Assembly: GCF_006345805.1 (NCBI RefSeq)
Contig: NC_043008.1
Coordinates: 31,124,001 to 31,188,000, forward strand
Reading direction: 5' to 3'
DNA length: 64,000 nucleotides
Source: Octopus sinensis
Lineage: Eukaryota
A model generated the notes under the pieces. It worked only from the letters and a program-made list of their open reading frames with translations. It did no database searches and had not been told where the DNA came from. Of the stretch, positions 4,632 to 64,000 are shown piece after piece. The translations under genes and the position numbers were made by a program. The first letter of the stretch is position 1; each line of letters opens with the position of its first letter.

Positions 4632-4799
4632 TACACAGAAAGAGAAAAACACAGAAAGAAGGAGAGAAAAAAAATGCGTGCAGTAGCTAACGAATCAACA
4701 GGCGATCTGATTTCGGCCGAGGTCAAAGATCAAACATGAGGACGCGAGAGCGAAATAAGGGGAGATAATAGGGTTGATAAAAGGGTGAGGGACCAGCTA

Positions 4800-4959: not shown

Positions 4960-6004
4960 GGGAAATTAAGATAGTTGTAAATGCGCTAGATTTTTATACA
5001 TATATATTGTTTGAATAAAATGAGCTTTATTTATATATTTTTTTACATAAGAGGAAAAGTTTTATCATATATGTATATAGGTACGGGAATGAAAATACAA
5101 AAATATGTTTCCGAAGTAAAAATTTTTCATACAGCAGATTTACTGTAAAAGTATTAGTTTGTTTTCACAAGGAACGTTTTACGCACATATCATAAAATAA
5201 AAAAAAATTTAAAAACAGAAAAATAAAAGAGAAAAAAATTGGAGATTATGGAATAAACTCTAGTGCATGCTATAGCCCAAAGGGTTCTGCAGCTGAAAAA
5301 AATCGAATTTTACTAGAAATATTTTTTACTGACCGGGGCTGGTTTTTGCTGTCTTTTAACTCACAAAGTTCAAAGTATGTTCTTTCAACGCATTATAAGA
5401 ACATGTGGTGGTGAGGTCATGTGTCTTGATAGATATATACATATTTGTGTATGTGTGTGTGTGCGTGTGTGTGTGTGTGTGTACTATGTACGTATGTATG
5501 TGTGTAAATTTATATATGCACATTCATGTATACATACATACTCACGTACACACTCAAACACACACACGCATGTATATATTGAATTTGTCATTCCCATCGA
5601 GTAGTGGTTCATGTCACGCAAACTCAACTTCGAACAGATGTTATTCGATTCAACCTAACAGCATTTCGTTTTCATTGTTCCTTTAGTTGTAATTCACACT
5701 GGTATAGACAGAGAGAGACATAGCTGTACGCAGATGTTTGTTATCTATAAACAAAAAGTATTAACATAAGGATTTTAAGTAGAGATAAATATTTTGTTAA
5801 TGATCATAGTTATTTCGAAGTTTTGTCAACCAGCTTGAAACAGCTTACTTCAAGGGAACTGCCAATAAAAATATGACTATCTATCAATCTATCTGTCTAT
5901 CTATCTGTCTATTTATCTATCTATATATCTATCTGTCTATCTGTCTATCTGCCTGCCTGGTTGTTTGTCTATCACGTAAAATTATTTGCATTAATCAGAA
6001 ACTC

Positions 6005-6170
6005 AATACAGATGTAGCGGGAGGTACGCAGTGTACTTCCCAACAACATGGTTCTGCGTTCGCTGCCGCTGCGTGGCACCTTGTGCAAGTGTCTTCTACA
6101 AGAACCAGAGGTAAACAAAGACTTATGAGTTGATTAGGCAGGCGGAAACTGAAAGAAGCCCACCGTATAT
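6005..6170 (+). mobile_element. Degenerate 5' half of tRNA-headed SINE (family A)
   Basis: GCGTGGCACCTTGTGCAAGTGTCTTCTAC...GGCGGAAACTGAAAGAAGCCC matches the full-length copies at 42111 and 43448. Confidence 0.75.
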
Positions 6171-6436
6171 AGATAGATATATTCATGTGTGTGTCTTTGT
6201 GTGTGTGTGCGTACGTGCGTGTTTGTGTGTGAATGTGCGTATGTATGTCCATGTGTCTGTGTGTGTGAGTGTGCGAGCGTGTGTATGTGTGCGTGCGTGT
6301 GTATGTGTGCACGCGCGTCTGTGTATAATACTGTTCTTGCGTATGTGTTTATTTACATCCCCATAATGTGACGGTTCAACAAAAGAACCAATAGAATAAG
6401 TACTAAGCTTGAGAAATTAAGCCCTGTGGTAATATC

Positions 6437-6467
<31 letters not shown>

Positions 6468-6495
6468 GGGTGTAGATAGATAGATAGATAGATAG

Positions 6496-6562
<67 letters not shown>

Positions 6563-6598
6563 CATATACATACACATAATCGTTTAGGGTATGTATGA

Positions 6599-6652
<54 letters not shown>

Positions 6653-7224
6653 TATATATATATGTATCGATATATATATATACATCTATGTATATATATA
6701 TACATACATCTATATATATATATATGTATGTATATATTTTATATGTGTATTTATGTAGTATGTATGTATGTATATATACATGTATATATGTGTGTGTGTA
6801 GGTATATATGTGTGTGTACATGTATATTTATACGTATATGTACTTGTAAAGGAATATTTATATATTCACATAATTACCATAAATATATATATATATATGG
6901 TAATTATTTGGAGTTTGGGTATATGCCTAGTAGCATGCCGATTTGACCACTTTCATCGAAATTATTCCCTCCTATGCCAGTGTAGCCGATACACTACGGG
7001 AAATAACAGATCACCATGTGAAACACAGTATATGTACGTAGTAACGTATCTTATTTGCATCAGACACCTGACGGGATACAGGCTGCATCGATGGCTGCAA
7101 CACAACTAGATATACTGTATCCCACTCATAAGGGGGCAGAAACAGATACTGCTATACTTGAGAATGATCATATTTTACGCAATATATTTGATCTTCACTT
7201 CACCTTTATCATTCTTGTTGTTTT

Positions 7225-7357
7225 AGTTTCTTTGTCAAAGCTCTTTTGTCACACATCCGGAAAAAACGAACTAAGCAGAACAAGAGGAGATACGTGGGAT
7301 AAAGTGTCGTAGATGAGGTCTCATGCTGCGTGACGAAAGAGCTTTGACGAAGAAACT
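7225..7357. repeat. 28-bp inverted repeat with 77-nt spacer (small MITE or inverted retroelement 3' end)
   Basis: AGTTTCTTTGTCAAAGCTCTTTTGTCAC (7225-7252) versus its reverse complement at 7330-7357, with 2 C/T differences. Followed by a (TAA)n(CAA)n tract. Confidence 0.75.
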
Positions 7358-7362
7358 ATAAA

Positions 7363-7449
<87 letters not shown>

Positions 7450-7881
7450 AATAATAATAAAGTTCAAGTGAAGACAAAATATATAGTGCGTGTGTTTCAC
7501 TGGTAAAATATGACCATCTCCAAGTATAACAATATATGTGTATGTGTTAGAAGTGATGTACAGATTTTGTATATTAAGAGAAAGGAGGCAATCAGAATTT
7601 CTATTTATTCTTTATCTCACGGTTTAGTCCATTCGTGCGGGGACTCTTCAGAATATATACATACATACATATATATATATATGTATATGTATGTATGTAT
7701 GTATGTATTTATGTTTGTATGTAAGTATTTATGTATGTATGTATGTATGTATGTATGTATGTATGTATGCATGCATGCATGTATGTATGTTTATGTATGT
7801 ATGTATGTATGTATGTATGTATGTGTGTATGTGTGTATGTATGGAAGCTTGTATATGTGTGTATATATATATATGTATATA

Positions 7882-9281
7882 CTGTAGTGGCCATAATATA
7901 AACGTCAGTAAGAACAAGTGTATTGAATTAGTTATTATAGAAGATTAACAACACGTTGAGATTAAATATTTTGTACATATTTAGATATGTCTAATATGTA
8001 TCTTTTGTGAAAATTTCAAGTGATTAGAATAAATATTTCGTAAGTTATGAGGAAATAAACAATCTTCCAAATTGCATCGGCGAAAAGTTGGGGGTCACTT
8101 AGAAAAAATGAACTACTAACCGAGTTATTCGTTGTATAGAAGACTGTTCATAGGCTATCATATCTTACATTATTAGAACATTCAACTGTCAACATGGCGG
8201 CTTGTGAAAGACGACCAGAGTCCTGTGATGGAAAACAAAGAATTGTGTGCCTTCACCAAGATAGCAACTACTGTAGGAAGGTCTAGAAGTGTTGTGCAAC
8301 GAATTGTAGCTCGTATTAAATCATCAGGATCGACAGATGCTAAATCCCAAACCGGTAGACTTCTTAAACTTCACCAAGACAGGATCGTATTATGGTTAGA
8401 ATGTCACTGAGATATTCTGTGACTTGTCAACGTATCGTGCAAATCCGTTTCCCGGAGGTTACGAGGTTCTGGGTTACTTGTTCGAACACCGGCAACAAGA
8501 GTTCCGAAGGTGGGATGAACACCCGACGAAGAAATGGCGAAAGATTATCTCGTGCATGTTTGAAGAACACAGTAAAATATAGAGGAAGCAGTGTAATGGT
8601 ATGCAGAGTAATCTCTGCTGCTAGTCCTGGTCCACTAATTCGTCTACAAGGGACTGTCAATGCTGAAATCTACAAGCAGATTCTTAGACAGCATACCCTT
8701 CCACATCTCCGATCCTCGTCAGTTCAACCTTCTATCTTCGTGCAGCACAACGTTCCCCGTCACACTGCAAAGAGAGTCAAAGATGTTTTGAGTGATGAAG
8801 GGGTCCCGACCTCAGCCCTATAGAAAACGTTTGGAAGTTTATTGGAGATGGAGTAAGAAGGAGAAATCCAAAGAACCAATATGAAGTCTGGGAATTATTG
8901 AAAAACGAAATTAACAATATTACTCCATCATTTTGCAAGAAATTAATTCAGTCCTGTGACAACTGATGTCAGGAGGTCATTGATAGTAAAGGGAAGTTCA
9001 CAAAATATTAATAGTAAGGGTTTCTTTTTATTCTTGTTCCATTTTTCACTGTTTTTCTAAGTGGCCCTTAACTTTTGGCCATTGCAGTTTAGAAGATTAT
9101 GTGTTTATTTCCTCATAACGTACGAAATATTTATTCCATTCAATCGAAATTTTCACGAAATATAGATATCAGATATATCTAAATATGCGTAAAATATCTA
9201 GTCTCAATGTTTTGTTAACCTTCTTTAACAAATATTTCAATACACATGTTCCTACTCACGCTTATAGTATGACCGCTACTG
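7882..9281 (+). mobile_element. Decayed Tc1-family DNA transposon with long (about 230 bp) terminal inverted repeats
   Basis: TIRs at about 7882-8110 and 9050-9281, TA at both junctions. Transposase remnants IATTVGRSRSVVQRIV (HTH), VMVCRVISAASPGPLIRLQGTVNAEIYKQIL, FVQHNVPRHTA, PDLSPIENVW. Confidence 0.88.
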
Positions 9282-12726: not shown

Positions 12727-13093
12727 GTATGCCTGTATGACACATGATCTCACCACCACACTTTCTTAATATGCATTGAAAAAACATACTTTGAACTGTC
12801 ATAAGCTGAACAACAACAAAAACCGGATACGGTCAGGGAAATAAAGTTTTTCAAGTAAAATTTAATCCTTTTTCAACTGCAAAACTTCTTGGGTTATAAC
12901 ATGCACTAAAATTTATTCAGTAAAAATTTTATTACGAGAACATTTTAATGCGTTTCAATAAAATGTAAAATTTTCTCTCCTTTTTTTATGTGTGTGTGTG
13001 TTGTATCAGTAAAACTTCCCTTGCGAAAACATACAGCAATACATTTACAGTAAGATTGGTATATGAAAAATTTTATTATTATTACTTTCATAT

Positions 13094-13168
<75 letters not shown>

Positions 13169-13263
13169 TAGATAGATAGATAGATGTAGATATAGATATA
13201 TATATATATATAGATATATAGATATATAGATATATATGTATGTATATATATATATATATATAT

Positions 13264-13369
<106 letters not shown>

Positions 13370-13423
13370 ATATATATATATATATATATATTATATATTA
13401 TATATATATATATAATATATATG

Positions 13424-14070
13424 TATAAAAATATGGTAAAGTAAAAGAATTCACTTTACCACACACCGAACTTTTCAGAAATAGCAGCCAAAAATTTGGC
13501 TATTTCTTCAACTGCAAATAAAAGTCTCCAGACAATGCATACTCAGAAAAAAACAATGAGAGATCACATCCATATACGATACCCGAGGACAGTCTGTTTC
13601 TGGATTTGTGGGTAAAACGCCACTTTTCCTTCATCAGCTCAGAGATTTCTTCCGATTTAGATTTGAAAATACTAAGAATCAAACATACCCATCCGATATC
13701 TGTAACATCGGACAAACCATGCCAGACACCCAGTACTAGCGAATCCAAAAATACGAATGAGATCTATTATTCTCCCTGTCCGCCCACGTGAGTCATAGAG
13801 CATTCCATTTCTACAGAGGTAAAAACTGCAGTGTGAGTTATTTTTCTGAGTATGCATTGTCTGGAGACTTTTATTTGCAGTTGAAGAAATAGCCAAATTT
13901 TTGGCTGCTATTTCTGAAAAGTTCGGTGTGTGGTAAAGTGAATTCTTTTACTTTACCATATTTTTATAAATTAATACTTCAAATATACCGTAAATGGTCT
14001 TTACATACCGAATACTGCTTGGTCGAATTTATTAATAATTAATTAATTCGACCCCCTTTTTTGATAACAA
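13424..14070 (-). mobile_element. ORF-less PLE-derived module with perfect 128-bp inverted repeats enclosing a hammerhead
   Basis: Arms 13424-13551 and 13841-13968 are exact reverse complements (checked base by base). The 289-nt loop contains a hammerhead; (TA)n lies on both flanks. Confidence 0.8.
13582..13643 (-). ncRNA. Type I hammerhead ribozyme (GUC cleavage triplet)
   Basis: Minus strand TCTGAG CTGATGA A GGA-AAAGTGG-CGTTTTAC-CCACAAA-TCC A GAAA CA-GAC-TG TC CTCGGG. Core intact, but there is an A.A mismatch at the base of stem II. Confidence 0.75.
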
Positions 14071-14123
14071 TATATATATGTATATATATTCATACATACA
14101 TATATATATGTATGTATATATAT

Positions 14124-14195
<72 letters not shown>

Positions 14196-14302
14196 TTTTG
14201 GCTTCCTATGTTAAAAAATATACTTGTTTTATTCAAATATATGTAAAAAAAAAAAAGCTATCGTATTTTCAACCCTGTCTTATTACTTTCAAATATATAA
14301 AT

Positions 14303-14331
14303 GCACACACACACACACACACACACACACA

Positions 14332-14362
<31 letters not shown>

Positions 14363-14464
14363 ACACACACACACACACACACATAAACACACACACACAC
14401 ACACACACACATAAACACACACACACACACACACATAAACACACACACACACACACACACACAC
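14303..14464. repeat. (CA)n microsatellite with interruptions
   Basis: Direct inspection. Confidence 0.95.
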
Positions 14465-15267
14465 GGTGCGCATGGTTTATGTGAGACCTGTATTATTATT
14501 GCAAAACCTAAATCAATGTAAGTGACATTTAAGTATTTCCAACGCTGCAACTGCAACAGGGCTGTAAATATAAAAACAAAAATAATGAAGAATTTTTTTC
14601 CGAAAAATTCCCACGAGTGTCTCTCTCTCAAACTACAACATATATGCATATATGCCTGCTGATGCTGTTGATATAATTTTGTTTGTATCATTGTATCGGT
14701 GTATGTATAGGTGCAATTGTTATGTGTCAGTACCACAGTATATGGATGTAAATCTGTTTAAGCTTGGATTCAACGGGTTATGTCACTTTTGATAGTGATT
14801 TCTCTCCGTTTTTGAAACAGATGGTAGGCTTTCATAGAAACGTAGCCGATTAGATTTTCAAAATTGTGTATTTTGTTCTCTCAGCCTTTCCTGAGAAACG
14901 ATCTAGGTTAGTGTTTTTAAATTTTGTACGCAAGTGATGTCTAGATGATCTTTAGATTTTTTAAAAATATAAATTAAGGTTTTAGATAATCTGCAGAGAT
15001 TTTGAGCGTCTAAAAAACGTGCTAAATATATTAGAAATAATTATTTTTACCATAAGTATTGTTAAGAAAATAAGTGTAAGCGACAGTTTTATATACATTT
15101 TTATTAACTTGAACTTTAAGATGCAGTTTCTTTAAATATCTTGCGATGTGCGTCAGTAATGTTCTGATCTTCGGTCACCTACGACATCAAAAGAATGAGA
15201 ACTACAAGTCCAATGATATTACCATTGTCTCTTTAACCAACAGCTTTAATAGTGTGAATATATAGAC

Positions 15268-15357
15268 AATACCAAACGAGTTCCCTATGGATACCGTATT
15301 TATTACAAGCCACGAGTTGTAATAAATATGGTATCCATAGGGAATGAGTTTGGTATT
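15268..15357. other. 41-bp-arm palindrome with a lox/FRT-like core
   Basis: AATACCAAAC-GAG-TTCCCTATGGATACC-G-TATTTATTACAA [GCCACGAG] TTGTAATAAATA-T-GGTATCCATAGGGAA-TGA-GTTTGGTATT. Confidence 0.9.
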
Positions 15358-15779
15358 TTATTTATTACACACGAATAAACGACCATATTTTATTAATCTA
15401 ATCATTAAATTCTTCACATCGTGTTGAAGCGCGCATGAATACAGCTTGATTTCACGTCAGTGACGTCACAATGTGTAACTGTAAAAGATGTCATGCCGCA
15501 GGAAGATAGTCCGACTTTATAGCGCTAAGTTTTCAGGTGAAATGACTGATAACTGATGACTATTTAACATTTTGTTAACATTCAAGTTCACGTTCAAGAA
15601 ATACATAACACAGATTGAATCTTCAATAACTTTAATAATACTCAAACATGTTTTCGAGTAGCAATGTCAGTCAGAGAATAGTCAGCACAATAGTCCAGGA
15701 AAACGTAACAGTCCTCATTATCTGTGAGACGAGGCCGCTTTGCATCTGAACCAAAGAAGTTCACATTGATTGTTCCCCC

Positions 15780-17273
15780 TTATATTGGAGCCAAGAAAAT
15801 GGAGTGCAATGAACCAAAGCAAGTGACAGCGTTCCGAGATTGACTCGACGTAACGTTGACGGTGGAGGGGAGTTCACTTGCACTCGCTGCTGCTATGTGT
15901 GACGGAGGTACAAGCGAACCAGGCTGGTCGTTGTTGCTACTAAGGATGTTACTGATGGCACGATGACGATCCATGGAAATATTGCTGTAACTATTGATGC
16001 TTTGCACATTACGATGTCCAGATATCTGCATGATTTCAGTTGGAGGAATGTTCTGGTCAGCGAGCTTCTGCACAAGGTATTTGCGTGCTGAATGGTTCGT
16101 GAATCTTCGATTGTCCAAACCAGCTGATTTAGCCATCCTTTTCATAATTGTACCTAGTTTGTTGACACCGACCGGTTGACGTTTAAACCAGGGATGAGAA
16201 TGGGAGGCATCTTTGCAGTTGGTGGCCAAATAAAATGGTGAATCCGGCGATGAATAATCTGATGGTCTCAGATCAGCAAAACGCTTGTACAGGTTAACTG
16301 GACAACGCTCATCATTCGTCGCCCATGCTTTTGGGTATATGTTACGTGCATGGTCGAGATTATCACCTTGATAAGTTTTGGACTGTCGCTCCCTAAACTG
16401 AAGGAATTCCTTGCCTTCATTGTCAACATGCAAAGAAACGTCGCCCCATCGCATGCCGTTGTGAGGTTTGACACTCCGGATACCAAAGTGAACGGTGTTG
16501 TTCCACCATAGCGTGTTGAGGATGGATTCAGGTGTGTTCGGAAAGAGCTGGTCACATTCCCATAGCTTGTTGATATCATCGTCGGAGAGAGATTCCGCGC
16601 GTCGAGGTAGGTTTCCCATTCCTTCACTTTTCAACAGCTTTTGCTTTGTTTTTAGTACGTCATGTAGTTTCACGAATGTCCCGTCCGAGAATAGTGACGT
16701 CGAGTAGTGTTTTGACTTCAGATATCTTTCAATACTGGATAACATTCCCCTCAAAGATGAAGGTTCATAGTTGCTACCGTCCGGGTTTCGTAACGAGATA
16801 AAGAAAGTACACAGAATGTCACAAAGTTCGCTTTTGTCGATAGATTCAATTGGACGCGTGTCGCCATTTGTCGCCATGAAAGCAAACAATCGTTTAACAT
16901 CATAGTTTGTTTTCCGAAGAGTGTTTTTATTTTGATTACCTTGAACGAATTTATCTATTCCAGAATGATCATACCTCGGTTGAAATTCAAGATCATTATG
17001 GCTATCATCAAAGAAATCGTCACGAAGAAGATCATTGTACACCTCATCAGGGATGTTAAATGTAGGGTTCGATGACAATCCACTCGTCGATGACACTGTT
17101 TCAGGTACCTTTGTTAACCTGTATCCAGCAACATGTCGAACTTGGCCAGTATTGATCTTCACATTGAACATTCTGTATGTTCCAAGAGGTTGAACAACGG
17201 ATAACACTCTTCCCCCATCTTTACCATCAATCTTAACAAAATCATTCACCTTGATATCGACAACAGTAGCCAT
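15780..17273 (-). CDS. Crypton tyrosine recombinase (DUF3504 / ZMYM-KCTD1-QRICH1-C-terminal-like), 497 aa from ATG 17273
   Basis: Catalytic set recognisable: HFGIR (R), SKTYQG (K), NHSAR (HxxR), ISGH (H), NSY (Y). Family motifs also present: YEPSSLRGMLSSIERYL, RCPVNLYK, SPFYL, WFKRQPVGVNKL. The ORF-track start at 17348 is a non-ATG codon. Confidence 0.9.
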   Translation of the reverse strand: MATVVDIKVNDFVKIDGKDGGRVLSVVQPLGTYRMFNVKINTGQVRHVAGYRLTKVPETVSSTSGLSSNPTFNIPDEVYNDLLRDDFFDDSHNDLEFQPRYDHSGIDKFVQGNQNKNTLRKTNYDVKRLFAFMATNGDTRPIESIDKSELCDILCTFFISLRNPDGSNYEPSSLRGMLSSIERYLKSKHYSTSLFSDGTFVKLHDVLKTKQKLLKSEGMGNLPRRAESLSDDDINKLWECDQLFPNTPESILNTLWWNNTVHFGIRSVKPHNGMRWGDVSLHVDNEGKEFLQFRERQSKTYQGDNLDHARNIYPKAWATNDERCPVNLYKRFADLRPSDYSSPDSPFYLATNCKDASHSHPWFKRQPVGVNKLGTIMKRMAKSAGLDNRRFTNHSARKYLVQKLADQNIPPTEIMQISGHRNVQSINSYSNISMDRHRAISNILSSNNDQPGSLVPPSHIAAASASELPSTVNVTSSQSRNAVTCFGSLHSIFLAPI

Positions 17274-17370
17274 CTTGTTGATAGATCTACCTGCACTGCA
17301 AGAGTATCGACGAGCAGACGATATATGTTGTGATTTTTTTGGCAGCAAAAAATTGAATTACGACCAGAAA

Positions 17371-17378
17371 TTTTTATA
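17371..17378 (-). promoter_or_regulatory. Candidate TATA box for the Crypton ORF
   Basis: TATAAAAA on the minus strand about 100 nt upstream of the ATG, with a CCAATCAG motif near 17540. The region is AT-rich, so this is weak. Confidence 0.3.
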
Positions 17379-17699
17379 TTTTATGTGTATATGACTTTAA
17401 GTGATATCTGGTATAAAAAAGATAGTATGTTTGTTTAATTACATGGCTACATTCTACCTGCTCGTGAAAGTTTAGTTGTAACTTATGAATGACAAAAGTA
17501 GTGCCGTCACCGTGACCTCGGGTCATCACCATGGATTGACCAATCAGAAGCAGCGCTCGCAGTATCTGACATATGTTAGATACCAAAAATATCTCAAAGT
17601 GTTCTCACTCACATGTGTGTAATAAATCTGGTTTCTACAGCGTTTCCATGCACCTGAAATGTTGTATTCATTCAATAGGAGATAGATCTATTTAGTCAG

Positions 17700-19100
17700 G
17701 GACTAAACAACAAAGTGAATTATCAGTTATTTTGTATTTGATTAATCGGATTTGGACAATACCTATGACATTTGCAAGGCTCTTGTGATGTATATATCTA
17801 TGAATCGATGCAATATCTATGAAAGTATTTAAGTTAACGAGTGTAGGTAAATCGTATGTTACTGGACCTATGTCTGGGAAAGAATCTGAGCAACCGTTTC
17901 CTTATTAACACTCGTCGGAAATTGATGTTGTCAATTCTATCTCCCTGCTTTGTTGCATCCGTTGTTTATCTGGCATAAGCTTTATTTGTGTGAAGGCAGC
18001 TTTGGCACAGGTTGTTAAGAGTGATCCCTAGTCTATAAATAGACCTTATAGGTGGCTTTTCTGTGGAAGGTGGTATTATTAGATCACTTTTCTGTAATTC
18101 TGAGTCGGAAGTTGGACAGGGTGAAAGAAAGAAAGTTCCAGTTTTATTTCGATGCTCTATTTCAAAATGTGTATGATCATACTATTTAAGCCGTTTGCCT
18201 CTTCACGAAATGTTATCTACATATCTGGAGGAGAAAGTACAGGTATACTAGGGTTAAAGAACTCTGTACTTTAGCTGGCCTATGTATGAGAAAGGTGATA
18301 AGCTTAATAGGCTTTATACATAGGAGATCCTGATGTTTTTTTGTTTTGTTTCTTTTTGCGTACACCAGTAAAAGAGAAAAGGGTGACGTTCGCAATAAAA
18401 GTCAAGAGCTGTCGACTATGCACTCAAAAAGTCAATATCGTTACATGTTTACTTAAAGACAGTATCTGTAGTAAAGTTAATTTCACTGCAGACTATATTG
18501 AATTAGTATTTTTCGAAGACAAATAAACAATTGATTCTATAAACACAATCTTGGAGGTATTTCATTTACAGAATCAGCAAGAATATTTGAAAGATTTGAT
18601 GGAGGGGGTCGCTAGGCTCTTATTAGCCATCTCAACTAGCAGGAGAACGAGCCAACAAGATAGCTGTAGTTTGATTACTAGACTTGCCAGAAATAACAAC
18701 CACATTCACCCATCAAATCTCACTCTTCGGATACATTGGCTAGTGTAGTCTTAGGTATTCTATTCCTGAAGAAAGAAGCGAGATTTTCTAAACTGGAATG
18801 CCATTGATCATAGACATACTCTATCAATGATGGCCTAGGGTTAAGCAAAATAAGCAACTGTTAAGGAAAGAAAACTAACTGGGTTTTTTTCAGTGAAATC
18901 CCACCACGACGTTCTAATGTGAAGCTTATAAATCACCAGATAGGATCATACTTTTACATGACATCCTCGCTGTAACATCTAAGAGAATCTCCGGTGTCAC
19001 TGCAGACTAAACACCAACTGCAGATTCGGCTATGTATGGACCTCTGAGATATCTAAGACGAGGTTGTCGAATTCTTGAACGTTTGTCATTACCAGAAGTG
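17700..19100 (-). mobile_element. Highly decayed LINE (CR1/Jockey-like) remnant
   Basis: Faint minus-strand motifs MILSGDL*ASH (APE GDFN-like) and IGPVT (GPD-like), with many stops. Confidence 0.3.
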
Positions 19101-56589: not shown

Positions 56590-57170
56590 AACATACATAC
56601 TCACTGACATACATACACACACACATACGCACACACACATACGCACACACATACTTACATGTATACATACATACTGACAGACATACATACACACACACTC
56701 ACACGCATACATAAATACATGCATACATACTCACCGACTTACATACCTACATACATACATACATGCATACATACGTACATACATACCTACATATATACAT
56801 ACATAAATTGCACACACAGACATACATACATGCATACATACGCACACACAAACACAAATACATATATACGTACAGAAACACACATACATACATACATACA
56901 TACATACATACATACATACACACATACATACATACACACATGCATACATACACACATACATACACACATACATACATACATACATACATACATACATACA
57001 TACATACATACACACATACATACACATACATACATACATACACACATACATACACACATACATACATACATACACACATACATACATACATACATACATA
57101 CACACACACATACATACATACATACATACATACACACATACATACACACATACATACATACATACATACA

Positions 57171-57204
<34 letters not shown>

Positions 57205-58409
57205 CATACATACATACATACACACATACATACACACATACGTACATACACACATACATACATACATACATACATACATACACACATACATACACACATA
57301 CATACATACATACACACATACACACATACATACATACATACATACATACATACATACACACACACATACATACATACATACATACACACATACATACATA
57401 CATACATGCATGCATACATACATACACACATACATACACACATACATACATACACACATACATATACATACATACATACATACACACATACATACATACA
57501 TACATACATACATACACCATACATACACACATACATACACACATACATACATACATACATACATACATACATACATACATACACAACATACATACATACA
57601 TACATACATACATACATACATACATACATACATACATACATACATACATACACACATACATACATACACACATACATATATACATACATACACACATACA
57701 TACACACATACATACATACATACATACATACATACATACATACACACATACATACACACATACATACATACATACATACATACACACATACATACATACA
57801 CACATACATACATACACACATACATACATACATACATACACATACACACATACATACATACATACATACATACACACATACATACACATTTACACACATA
57901 CATACATACATACATACATACATACATACATACATACATACATACACACATACACACATACATACATACATACATACATACATACATACATACATACACA
58001 CATACATACACACACACATACATACACACATACATACATACATACATACATACATACACACATACATACATACATACATACATACATACATACATACATA
58101 CATACATGCATACATACACACATACATACACACATACATACATACATACATATATACATACATACATACATACATACACACATACATACATACATACATA
58201 CATACATACATACACACATACATACACACATACATACATACATACATACATACACACATACATACATACATACATACATACATACATACATACATACATA
58301 CATACATTACATACATACATACATACATCCATACATACATTACATACATACATACATACATACATCCATACATACATTACATACATACATATATACATAC
58401 ATACATACA

Positions 58410-58440
<31 letters not shown>

Positions 58441-58514
58441 CACACATACATACACACATAAATACATACACACATACATACATACATACATACATACATA
58501 CATCCATACATACA

Positions 58515-58545
<31 letters not shown>

Positions 58546-58617
58546 CATACATACATACATACATACATACATACATTACATACATACATACATACATTAC
58601 ATACATACATACATACA

Positions 58618-58648
<31 letters not shown>

Positions 58649-58693
58649 CATACATACATACATACATACATACATACATACATTACATACATA
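56590..58693. repeat. About 2.1-kb compound (ACAT)n/(AC)n array
   Basis: Direct inspection; the source of the 380-738 aa HTYI/MYVC pseudo-ORFs. Confidence 0.97.
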
Positions 58694-59114
58694 CATATGT
58701 AGTATTACAAATTGTTCATGCTGTTCATCGAACATTTTATCCCTCGCTCTCCTTCTCTCACTCGCCTTCTCCCTCTTTCTCTCTTACACACAGACTCTCT
58801 CTCACACACAGTCATACACACACCCTCTCTCCCTCTCTTTCCCTCTTTCTCCCTCTCTCTCTCTCTCACTCAGTCCCTCACTCTCTCTTTTTCACTTTCA
58901 CTCTCATCCTGTTTTACGCACACACCCTCTCTCACCCCTCTCTCTCTCTCTCTCTCATCATGTATTTACAATTCCTTAATATATGCGTATGTATGAATGT
59001 ATGTATAAATGTATGTATAAATGTATGTATAATGTACGGGCGTATGTATGTATGTATGTATGCTTGCATGTATGTATACATGCCTGTATACATGCCTGCA
59101 TGCACGTTTATCTG

Positions 59115-61798: not shown

Positions 61799-64000
61799 TA
61801 GTTTTATTTTTATAGCGTGCTTTCACTTCACTACCGAGCGCAGCTCTGTGTGCCTTGGGTATGTGCTGTGATTTGTTGTGATGCTCTGATGGTTATTGTA
61901 TGGAAAGTGTTCTGCGTAGGATGTGTGCAGTGCCTAGTAGTGCAATTTTCTGTATGTTATATGTGTTTGTAAGTCCTGGTGTTTTTGTTATGTATTTGTC
62001 TGGATATTTTTTTATCATGCCTAATGCACCTACTATGATAGGAATTGTTTCTGTTTTCAGATTCCACATTCTAGTTACCTCTATTTCCAGGTCTTTGTAT
62101 TTTGAGAGTTTCTCCATTTCTTTTAGAGACACGTTGTCATCAGCCGGTATTGATACATCAATTAGAAAGCATTTTTTTTCTTCATGATCTCTGACAACTA
62201 TATCTGGTCTGTTGGCCTTAATTTTTCTATCTGTGTGTATCGGCATATCCCAGTGTATGATTGCTTTCTCGTTTTCTGTGACCTTTTCTGGTGTGTGCCT
62301 ATACCATCTTTTTTCTGTTGTTATTCCATAATGTTGGCATAGCTTCCAGTGTATGTAGGTTCCAACTCTGTCATGTCTGTGAATATATTCCTTCTTAGCC
62401 AGGACTGGGCAGCTAGAGATAATATGATTTATTGTTTCTTGTCCATCTCCACATATTCTGCAGTTACTTGTAATATTTCTTTTCATTACATGTTTTTGGT
62501 AATTTCTGGTGGGGAGGCTTTGGTCTTGTGCTGCAATTAAAAATCCTTCAGTCTCTGCTTTGAGTCCTGAGCTTCTCAACCATTGCTGGGATTTTTCTTT
62601 GTCTATTTCTTTTGCGTTTAGTTTAGTCCAGTATTTACCATGAAGGGGCTTTTCTTGCCATCGTTTTATCATGGTTCGTTGCTGTTCTCTTTTTAGTTTG
62701 GATTTCATTTGTTTTATAGCTTTTGTTGTTTCTTCATCTTCTTCTTCTTCTTCATGTTTATTAGGTGGTATGATTTCTTGTTTGTATTTGTCAGCTTCCT
62801 TAAATACTGAGAACAGTTTTTTGTTTTGCTCGTGTTTTGCCGCTATCTGGATCAGTTTTCCTTCCTTCTGAAGTAGATATTTTTGCAGTCCGATGGTGGT
62901 TATTTTATAGTAGTTTTCCAGCTGTATATATAGTCTTTCTATGTCAGATTTTGGGTGATGCATCCTAGATCCTGTCATTATTTTTCTTGTTTTCCTATCT
63001 ATTTTGGTCAGTTCATTTCGTGTCCAGTTAAGGATATTGTAGCTGTAACTTATAACTGGGACAGCTAAAGTGTTGATACCTATTATCTTGTTTTTAGCAT
63101 TGAGCCCTGTGTTTAGTATTGATCTAACTCGTCTATAATATTCTTTTTTTATTTTCTCTTTCATTTGTGTGTGTTGTGTCTTATCTAGTTCATGGATTCC
63201 TAAGTATTTGTAAGTTTGGCTTTGGTCTAATTCTTTTATTTCATTGGTTTTATCTAGTGTGATGTTATTACTCTTAACTAGTTTTCCTCTTTTCAGGGTT
63301 ACTTTGGCGCATTTTTCTAATCCAAATTTCATATCTATTTCTTTGGTAAATCCATGAACTGTCTTTAATAGTGTTTCCAGCTGTTTGTCATTTGCAGCGT
63401 ATAGTTTTAGGTCATCCATATATAAAAGGTGGCTGATCGTTTTGCCGTAACATTTATATCCGGATCCAGTTCTATTTAGCATATCAGATAGAGGTGACAG
63501 TGCCAAGCAGAAAAGGAGTGGAGAGAGCGTGTCTCCCTGGAATATTCCTCTTCTAATGGGGAAGTCTTTGGTTTTCATGAGTCCCTCTTTTGTTTGGAGG
63601 TGTAGGACTGTTTGCCATTTTTTCATAGAGTGCTCTATGAATTTTATGATTGTTGGTGCTACTTTGTTAATGGCTAGTGTTTCGAGGATCCATGTGTGGG
63701 GGATGCTATCAAACGCCTTTTTGTAGTCAATCCAGGCCATACTGAGGCCTTTCTTCTTTCTGTGGCTGTCTTCAGTTATGGCTTTATTAATCATTAGTTG
63801 ATCTTTACAGCCATATGAGCCTTTGCGGCATCCTTTCTGCTCTTCTGGGAACAGTTTGTTTTCGTCCAGGTGCTTGTTCAGCCTTTGTGATATCACTGCA
63901 ATAAATGCCTTGAACATAGTAGGGAGGCAGGTTATTGGTCTGTAGTTTTCTGGTTTTTCTGTTTCACTTGATTTGGGAATTAAGATGGTTTTCCCCTTCG
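61740..64000 (-). mobile_element. R4/Dong-type RLE non-LTR retrotransposon, 3' portion; continues beyond the window
   Basis: Open ORF, 96-nt 3' UTR (61797-61892) and (TAA)n tail (61740-61795). Confidence 0.93.
61893..64000 (-). CDS. RT - CCHC zinc knuckle - restriction-like endonuclease polyprotein (partial; frame open to the window edge)
   Basis: NYRPITCLPT, EQKG, DYKKAFDSI, GIFQGDTLSPLLF, YMDD, YKYLG, CRICGDGQETINHIISSC, RHD, RPDIVV, LIDVSIP...KLSKY. Confidence 0.93.
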   Translation of the reverse strand, partial: KGKTILIPKSSETEKPENYRPITCLPTMFKAFIAVISQRLNKHLDENKLFPEEQKGCRKGSYGCKDQLMINKAITEDSHRKKKGLSMAWIDYKKAFDSIPHTWILETLAINKVAPTIIKFIEHSMKKWQTVLHLQTKEGLMKTKDFPIRRGIFQGDTLSPLLFCLALSPLSDMLNRTGSGYKCYGKTISHLLYMDDLKLYAANDKQLETLLKTVHGFTKEIDMKFGLEKCAKVTLKRGKLVKSNNITLDKTNEIKELDQSQTYKYLGIHELDKTQHTQMKEKIKKEYYRRVRSILNTGLNAKNKIIGINTLAVPVISYSYNILNWTRNELTKIDRKTRKIMTGSRMHHPKSDIERLYIQLENYYKITTIGLQKYLLQKEGKLIQIAAKHEQNKKLFSVFKEADKYKQEIIPPNKHEEEEEDEETTKAIKQMKSKLKREQQRTMIKRWQEKPLHGKYWTKLNAKEIDKEKSQQWLRSSGLKAETEGFLIAAQDQSLPTRNYQKHVMKRNITSNCRICGDGQETINHIISSCPVLAKKEYIHRHDRVGTYIHWKLCQHYGITTEKRWYRHTPEKVTENEKAIIHWDMPIHTDRKIKANRPDIVVRDHEEKKCFLIDVSIPADDNVSLKEMEKLSKYKDLEIEVTRMWNLKTETIPIIVGALGMIKKYPDKYITKTPGLTNTYNIQKIALLGTAHILRRTLSIQ

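Follow-up and report, generated by a model that had tools for sequence, protein, structure and literature searches.

Cryptons remain the most poorly understood order of DNA transposons in eukaryotes, and their DUF3504 lineage is also the source of ZMYM2-4, QRICH1, KIAA1958 and KCTD1. DUF3504 itself is a Crypton-derived recombinase domain, and terminal repeats were not found in animal Cryptons by Kojima and Jurka in 2011 (PMC3212892). A curation guide of 2022 gives a short direct repeat as the sole distinguishing feature, and in the 2026 description of Glomhopper, a DUF3504 CryptonA, some families carry no description of repeats and element boundaries are not defined (PMC13465315). Among better described tyrosine-recombinase systems, the recombination of integron attC with attI involves cleavage and exchange of only the folded bottom strand, and the resulting junction is resolved by replication (PMC3458562). 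Here, we analyzed a 64,000-nucleotide (nt) stretch of Octopus sinensis chromosome CM016870.1 (GCA_006345805.1), referred to below as the window, which contains a tyrosine recombinase gene with a palindrome downstream of it. The two belong to one mobile element, which is an autonomous CryptonA (DUF3504-type) tyrosine-recombinase transposon and displays all the defining features that were tested. The palindrome is probably the cis-acting recombination site of this transposon, and not a loxP-like core as had been proposed in an earlier note on the window. In a full-text survey of the literature to 2026, with Repbase entries outside its scope, no Crypton hairpin or palindromic recombination site with such a structure was described.

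To define the element, we compared it with its closest relatives. The recombinase falls in a 90% identity cluster with 10 further members, all from Octopus vulgaris, which correspond to seven O. vulgaris loci (L002-L008). BLAST alignments between the window and these loci showed 94-99% identity starting exactly at 17627 and stopping at 15259-15262, and the flanks outside these limits are unrelated among the octopus copies. The homology limits delineate a transposon of 2.36 kb (~2364 bp) on the minus strand, whose boundaries are both given to within 2 nt, an AT dinucleotide flanking each end. One locus, L004 (O. vulgaris OX597825.1), has both flanks in common with the window copy and represents the orthologous insertion; as the sole orthologous locus reached, it is filled and not an empty site. 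An intact open reading frame (ORF) is present in three copies (497, 522 and 518 amino acids as called), the remaining copies being split or deleted. Dispersed copies at unrelated loci, with identical ends, no target-site duplication and short microhomology to the target, were observed for the eight octopus copies as well as for six copies of a distant family (Fam2, see below). The palindrome lies inside the element at the gene-downstream end, and a 13-nt repeat at 17615-17627 marks the opposite terminus.

The ends of these copies reveal how the palindrome relates to the site of recombination. In gene orientation, every octopus copy starts ...n^TTATTACACAC and ends ...GGTATT(G/C)TCTAT^ (carets mark the crossover), without target duplication. 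The 5'-terminal sequence (M box) is complementary to an internal M' box, and the two boxes covary across families; in the window they appear as the perfect 13-nt inverted repeat ATTTATTACACAC (15360-15372) / GTGTGTAATAAAT (17615-17627). When the two ends are joined, M pairs with M' and extends the palindrome into one hairpin of ~180 nt (180-185 nt in full-length copies) with the layout M' (13 nt), 5-nt spacer, A' box, long stem, A box, 7-nt spacer S (TCTCTAT) and M. In six of the seven elements compared, M'-spacer-A' is the reverse complement of the joined A-S-M except for a 2-nt spacer indel: S exceeds the internal spacer by 2 nt, and the excess forms a TC bulge. The crossover, CTAT^TTAT, coincides with the S/M border at the hairpin base, and it detaches the outermost arm M to the gene-upstream end of the integrated element; it is for this reason that the 13-nt inverted repeat seems to span the element. 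Thus, the alignment of copies that the earlier note had suggested as a check places the ends at ~15262 and 17625 and the crossover point at CTAT^TTAT.

A total of 17 tabulated insertions from at least 10 families share the 3' terminus ...AT(T/C)CTCTAT^ (CTAT in Ptychodera). Both junctions could be read in 16 insertions, including two with tentative 5' ends, and S was found at the 3' junction in 16/16, with no case at the 5' junction and none on both sides. If the circle is written as A-S-M and the target as L-S'-R, all 16 insertions have the form L-S'-M ... A-S-R. Such a pattern indicates a unique crossover of constant polarity, and a very short stagger would look alike. Insertion took place in AT-rich targets (~AT^WTAT, in many cases (TA)n tracts) without duplicating them; the 3' flank begins with a WTAT-like sequence, and the 5' flank ends in AT in 7/12 insertions. 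A 2-bp AT target duplication was considered as a general rule and rejected, since it fits 5/12 insertions and fails in the rest.

The palindrome of the window copy has 41-nt arms with four mismatches (15268-15308 / 15317-15357), which a repeat search widens to 49-nt arms that are 86% complementary and 8 nt apart (15260-15308 / 15317-15365). Its centre, TATTTATTACAA-GCCACGAG-TTGTAATAAATA at 15297-15328, occurs once in the window, and 100 shuffles yielded no match with up to three mismatches allowed. Folded as single-stranded DNA, the palindrome region reaches -34.2 kcal/mol on the plus strand (z = -12.4) and -31.5 kcal/mol on the minus strand (z = -10.3), and none of 200 shuffles attained its energy. 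The TTTATTACA box is present four times in the window, always within 15299-17626, compared with ~2.6 occurrences expected over 64 kb. The 12+8+12 palindrome and the spanning 13-nt repeat are therefore real features of this sequence, just as the earlier note had described them. What did not survive is the loxP/FRT-like interpretation of the centre, because the orthologue L004 and three further copies (L005, L007 and L008) have 62 nt between the TTGTAATAAATA arms, as opposed to 8 nt in the window copy. The additional 54 nt carry the palindrome on to its tip (...ACAACTCGTGGCTTGTAAACGTATCTAACTCGC TTT CGCTCGTTAGATACGTTTACAAGCCACTCGTTGT...). These four copies represent the full-length hairpin form; the short form is confined to the window copy and L002, and L003 and L006 have other nested deletions. 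Since the orthologue and the three other copies carry the same extra 54 nt, the long hairpin is the ancestral form, and the window copy lost the tip after O. sinensis and O. vulgaris split. The short form is also what would be expected to remain after slippage between two TTGTAA direct repeats (a 54-nt deletion). The 8-bp GCCACGAG spacer is thus the remnant of one arm left by the deletion, and there is therefore no basis for a loxP-like core at this position.

Nor does the crossover take place within the 8-bp spacer, as had been claimed. The termini of all eight octopus copies lie 47-49 nt from it, at CTAT^TTAT at the base of the palindrome, and the related families examined all show this basal position; the counterparts of the arm boxes in other families are separated by 50-60 nt across the tip of the hairpin. 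One part of the claim about cognate binding and crossover sites fares better: given that the TTTATTACA box lies directly at the point of recombination and that one end of the element is marked by the 13-nt repeat, the two are very likely recognition sequences of the recombinase. At the hairpin tip, octopus (L004 6980-6996) and Littorina (L097, ~4680-4700) have the same motif, CTCGCTTTCGCTCG, despite differing stems, which hints at a sequence-specific contact there. A likeness between the right flank and the hairpin arm (15285-15307 vs 17618-17640, 78%) is absent at other copies and was taken as chance.

The same layout recurs in families whose recombinases have only 40-57% protein identity, including those of the gastropod Littorina saxatilis and the hemichordate Ptychodera flava. 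Fam2 (P0026; 40% amino-acid identity) has six loci in a eukaryotic assembly from ENA, all within (TA)n tracts; these represent five independent insertions, two loci being allelic or duplicated. Its 5' end reads (TA)n^ATTTATTACATAAC, and the ORF is followed by GTTATGTAATAAAT-AAA-(~159-nt palindrome)-TCTCTAT^(AT)n. In L009 (63% identity), the covarying boxes are GGTATGTAAGAAAT / ATTTCTTACACACC, and L016 and several metagenome loci retrieved by a recombinase profile search have the same layout. The M' box is conserved and covarying in L009, Fam2, L016, Ptychodera and Littorina. M' boxes hold a poly(A)-like hexamer just before the hairpin (AATAAA, TATAAA, AAGAAA or GATAAA, depending on the family), and the box may serve both recombination and polyadenylation.

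The length of the joined-end palindrome is nearly the same in five families (180, 181, 182, 180 and 185 nt), and the stem sequence diverges between families with its complementarity kept. RNAalifold analysis of three families gave 65 pairs, 36 of them with compensatory double changes, and the five joined-end sequences gave 80 pairs, of which 50 are compensatory. In the five-sequence structure, 90.5% of the cells are paired, compared with 67.8% in shuffled data (0/500 reached the observed value) and 31-42% when partners were slid by 1-3 columns. Not every locus carries the hairpin: of the 59 loci whose sequence continues for at least 700 nt beyond the recombinase domain, a strong hairpin was detected in 26, and 22 of the 59 combine it with symmetric YTCR. 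A hairpin was not detected in many of the metagenome loci, which may represent decayed copies, domesticated genes or another subtype. The split arm is demonstrated in only six or seven families, because complementarity did not reveal the 5' terminus at L024, L031, L033, L076 and similar loci.

Two side observations concern these relatives. L012 contains, within one (TA)n tract (5730-7603), a full Fam2 element, an inverted 3' fragment arranged tail-to-tail, and a ~1-kb internal-deletion derivative that retains both ends; two 5' ends stand head-to-head (TGTAATAAAT-AT-ATTTATTACA). This arrangement suggests repeated insertion at or beside the ends of an existing element. L009 carries a piggyBac-type transposase fragment (DDE_Tnp_1_7, 8126-8632) 1.3 kb downstream of the Fam3 Crypton, in an assembly (ERZ25071447) that also holds Fam2.

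A further regularity of these hairpins is the distribution of their mismatches between the two strands. When 12 divergent hairpins were folded to minimum energy, 19 internal loops proved to be of the 2x2 TC/TC type on the gene-sense strand; they are closed as CTCG/CTCG or TTCG/CTCA. In octopus, Fam2 and L016, the distances of these loops from the hairpin centre are ~5.5, 29.5 and 60.5 nt, with spacings of 24 and 31-32 nt, so the outer mismatch is found ~60 nt from the centre in all three. On the antisense strand, these loops correspond to tandem G.A mismatches in a 5'-Y-GA-R-3' context. This context favours sheared, well-stacked G.A pairs. Tandem sheared G.A pairs have been reported to possess unusual stacking stability (PMC8163305). 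A census of the sense strand of 14 hairpins counted 61 T.C/C.T mismatches vs 7 G.A/A.G, and 18 A.C vs 9 G.T, so that wobble pairs also tend toward the antisense strand. Of the 13 hairpins folded, 12 have a slightly better predicted fold on the antisense strand. The persistence of the mismatches shows that neither arm is a mere copy of the other; the arms are kept different at the mismatch sites while their surroundings change.

The sole long ORF within 15262-17625 encodes the tyrosine recombinase; other ORFs (60-119 amino acids) lie in its other frames or in the untranslated regions. The protein matches the Pfam families DUF3504 (E = 5.9e-24), Phage_integrase (6.9e-9) and QRICH1 (2.4e-7), and neither the ORF list nor the Pfam search revealed a reverse transcriptase, RNase H or DDE transposase in the element. 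In an alignment of 24 homologues, R266, R397, H420 and Y429 do not vary and K299 and H394 hardly do, on which grounds the catalytic set of an active tyrosine recombinase is intact in the window ORF. The earlier identification of a Crypton-type tyrosine recombinase is borne out by these results. A PDB profile search identified human QRICH1 (9hjt) as the closest solved structure and returned QRICH1 only, with no bacterial tyrosine recombinase at E <= 1 and no sequence link to IntI, Xer or Cre. The N-terminal 110 residues (16944-17273, minus strand), which have no Pfam match, are conserved among homologues (V-IDG-G-G-V ... Y-V ... RL) and could form a small chromatin-binding or DNA-binding module. 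Outside the window, the O. vulgaris protein P0070 (608 amino acids) is 89% identical to the recombinase over 20% of its own length; it joins this Crypton piece to DUF4817, paired-box and HTH domains, and is likely a gene-model chimera with a Tc1/mariner-like element. The features of the element are listed in Table 1.

Table 1. Coordinates of the CryptonA element and its parts in the window
Feature	Position	Strand	Basis or remark
Whole CryptonA-type transposon	15262..17625	-	Homology with seven copies begins and ends here beside unrelated flanks
S, 7-nt 3'-terminal spacer	15262..15268	-	TGTCTAT here; TCTCTAT or CCTCTAT in most copies and families; crossover immediately after
Hairpin-forming palindrome proper, truncated in the window copy	15269..15356	.	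A box 15269-15277 pairs with A' box 15348-15356
CGAG, outer tandem G.A mismatch site	15277..15280	+	Pairs with TGAG 15345-15348; plus strand is antisense; TC/TC-type on the gene-sense strand
Inner M-like boxes ATTTATTACA (15298-15307) and TGTAATAAAT (15318-15327)	15298..15327	.	Flank the 8-nt remnant GCCACGAG (15309-15316)
M' box (GTGTGTAATAAAT in gene orientation), directly upstream of hairpin	15360..15372	-	Internal complement of the 5' terminus; contains AATAAA
Tyrosine recombinase ORF, intact, 497 amino acids from first ATG	15780..17273	-	Pfam matches and catalytic residues
M box, element 5' terminus in gene orientation (TTATTACACAC)	17615..17625	-	All copies begin here; with AT 17626-17627 it makes the 13-nt arm ATTTATTACACAC

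With regard to mechanism, we propose that the recombinase would bind to the two boxes that flank the spacer, M and A, and cleave next to M. The site may be used either as a folded antisense-strand hairpin or as an extruded cruciform, and replication would then complete a single strand exchange, as in the reactions of integron attC with attI and of CTX phage attP(+). Among the models considered, we favour this use of the site, with a single exchange completed by replication, although we would place it just short of an even call. If the folded strand is the substrate, the antisense hairpin should be bound and cleaved in preference, the cut falling 3' of ...GTGTGTAATAA. The wider proposal is that animal CryptonA elements recombine via a folded single-stranded antisense hairpin made from both ends, by single exchange and replication, and that this hairpin, marked by tandem sheared G.A pairs and the 2-nt bulge, is a eukaryotic counterpart of attC and CTX attP; this we offer tentatively, as a possibility on the speculative side.

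Several observations weigh against the reading of the palindrome as a recombination site that acts as a folded strand. A and M look alike as inverted half-sites separated by a spacer of 7 bp, an arrangement that would also fit a conventional double-stranded core, and the duplex and folded-strand models are not separable by the junction data because a very short stagger also gives a unique junction. Any process acting on double-stranded inverted repeats would likewise keep the arms complementary, so that covariation is not proof of strand folding. Part of the conservation of M' could be due to polyadenylation at its AATAAA. The hairpin with symmetric YTCR, as counted above, belongs to part of the CryptonA clade only, or many of the loci have decayed, and the short hairpin of L051 is an exception to the strand bias, with a purine mismatch on the sense strand. 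The recombinase has no detectable sequence match to solved bacterial tyrosine recombinases, including the integron and Xer enzymes. Finally, a search of 97 loci for terminal redundancy and for post-CTAT sequence complementing the upstream region yielded no circle junction, tandem copy or circular contig, only microsatellite noise, and no empty site or excision footprint was found among the loci examined; hence, it is solely from the sequences of the ends that the circle and the precise points of cleavage are inferred.

Alternative explanations of the palindrome were weighed against the same data. The main rival, a conventional duplex core at the circle junction, is in our judgment rather unlikely. 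In this model, A and the inverted M would enclose the 7-bp TCTCTAT, both strands would be exchanged 7 bp apart, and the palindrome and M'-A' would act only as accessory or scaffold sequences. A and M do share a loose inverted consensus in several families (RTGTRRKAT / RTGTRAKAA), a 7-nt spacer is of canonical length, and the 5' flanks of L009 and L016 (TATTCTAT and TTCCTATG) resemble the spacer as if targets mimicked the core. However, two staggered exchanges between unlike spacers should generate both product types, whereas S is confined to the 3' junction in 16/16 insertions and is never duplicated. The ~70-nt complementarity of the arms despite their divergence, the fixed total length and the one-strand TC asymmetries would also remain unexplained by such a core. 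For the central TATTTATTACAA-GCCACGAG-TTGTAATAAATA as a loxP/FRT-like binding and crossover site, little remains beyond the perfection of its 12+8+12 geometry in the window copy and the presence in its arms of the TTTATTACA box, which abuts the real crossover. We consider this site very improbable: its geometry is missing in the orthologue and in 5/7 other copies, being the product of the 54-nt deletion, and the distances of the element ends from the spacer and of the boxes from each other in other families, given above, do not agree with it.

The hairpin might prime or initiate complementary-strand synthesis of a single-stranded circular intermediate, as a single-strand origin, instead of or besides its role in recombination. 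Strand-specific folding features are typical of such origins, and this function would be compatible with a single-strand transposition pathway; but the element has no replication protein, and a crossover that splits the outer arm would be left without an explanation, which makes an origin improbable. The replication-origin hairpin mentioned as an alternative in the earlier note is likewise without direct support, and the element lacks a Rep gene. An RNA-level element (a stem-loop in the 3' untranslated region, a terminator, a polyadenylation context or a precursor of silencing small RNAs) would agree with the location of the palindrome ~410 nt downstream of the stop codon and with the AATAAA-like hexamers in the M' box of most families. 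We think this quite improbable: the outer stem requires the 5' terminus, and no transcript of an integrated copy would have the two next to each other; most of the hairpin would be lost if the transcript were cleaved after AATAAA; the sense RNA has destabilising UC/UC mismatches; and the crossover coincides exactly with the stem base. An Rfam search over 15000-17900 gave sub-threshold hits only (mir-7131, 24.7 bits vs a gathering score of 74; LhrA). An independent insertion of a foldback or miniature inverted-repeat transposable element (MITE), or a chance feature beside the recombinase gene, is hardly credible. Foldback repeats are common in this genome (an example being 13405-13987 in the window), but the palindrome is found at the same place in all eight octopus copies within their shared boundaries, as the earlier note's assignment of palindrome and recombinase to one mobile element would have it; moreover, at least 10 other families have unrelated sequences with this layout, and the palindrome motif is found only once in the window.

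Other repeats were observed elsewhere in the window. The foldback at 13405-13987 has 147-nt arms (95% complementary, 289 nt apart) and sits among (GATA)n, (TA)n and (CA)n microsatellites (13066-13450 and 14093-14470); it is probably a foldback/MITE-type repeat, and its sequence is unrelated to the Crypton hairpin. A 2.1-kb (ACAT)n array at 56591-58697 (525 copies, 87% matches) gives rise to long spurious ORFs in several frames on both strands. The minus strand at 61893-63917 contains an ORF of 674 amino acids with RVT_1 (1.3e-26) and zf-RVT domains, probably a copy of a retrotransposon without long terminal repeats (non-LTR).

Returning to the palindrome as the recombination site of the transposon, the original claim needs to be corrected in one respect: the relevant site is the joined-end hairpin of a full-length copy and not the 12+8+12 sequence of the window copy. 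The window and its relatives supply exact ends, a conserved terminal motif, a target preference and a ~180-nt structured site for an animal Crypton, and this terminal signature lets annotators find complete elements. The features of the site can be mutated singly (the M and A boxes, the 7-nt vs 5-nt spacer and the three G.A sites), which makes the mechanism testable. If the folded strand is indeed the substrate, a mode of recombination known only from bacteria would extend to animals, and the hairpin would be the first structure-specific tyrosine-recombinase site in eukaryotes, with a defined pair of recombinase and site usable for engineering. The novel part is the terminal architecture, with a joined-end hairpin that is conserved from molluscs to a hemichordate.

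Compared with described CryptonA/DUF3504 elements (Goodwin 2003; PMC3212892; PMC13465315), the octopus transposon is alike in its single DUF3504-type ORF, its size of ~2.4 kb, the lack of reverse transcriptase and DDE transposase, its dispersed copies without target-site duplication and the microhomology between junction and target (TTAT/WTAT). It differs in that no terminal structure is given in published accounts of animal Cryptons, whereas a 3'-subterminal palindrome, 180-185 nt when joined in full-length copies, is present here; the split outer arm, the (T/C)CTCTAT terminus, the fixed TC/GA mismatches and the (TA)n-like target preference are further points of difference. The integron attC site and IntI (PMC3458562, PMC5027507) offer a close parallel: attC, too, is imperfectly palindromic, and there also the crossover cuts through the outermost arm, so that integration leaves most of the site at one end of the unit and a short part of the outer box at the other. 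Both sites have paired boxes around an unpaired spacer, conserved strand-specific unpaired marks, and a single crossover position that requires little target homology. Unlike attC, the Crypton hairpin is longer, carries tandem mismatches and a 2-nt bulge in place of extrahelical G/T, and resides in an animal host; its recombinase falls outside the IntI/Xer clades by PDB profile search, and the use of one strand is here inferred from sequence.

Cre/loxP and Flp/FRT share with the Crypton a tyrosine recombinase and a box-spacer-box arrangement, seen here at the joined ends with an asymmetric 7-nt spacer (A-TCTCTAT-M). They differ in that the Crypton arms are only loosely symmetric and the site lies within a long palindrome, the 12+8+12 centre being a deletion product. 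The attP(+) site of CTX phage, used by XerCD, also consists of two inverted core-like sites (compare M'-5 nt-A' and A-7 nt-M) that are able to anneal in one strand with an imperfectly paired centre, and its enzymes are different. The CTX phage genome is naturally single-stranded, and we know of no single-stranded stage for Cryptons. DIRS elements have reverse transcriptase, RNase H, methyltransferase and long inverted terminal repeats, all of which are lacking in the Crypton, a DNA transposon; in both, however, an internal segment, in DIRS the internal complementary region (ICR), is complementary to the two termini set side by side.

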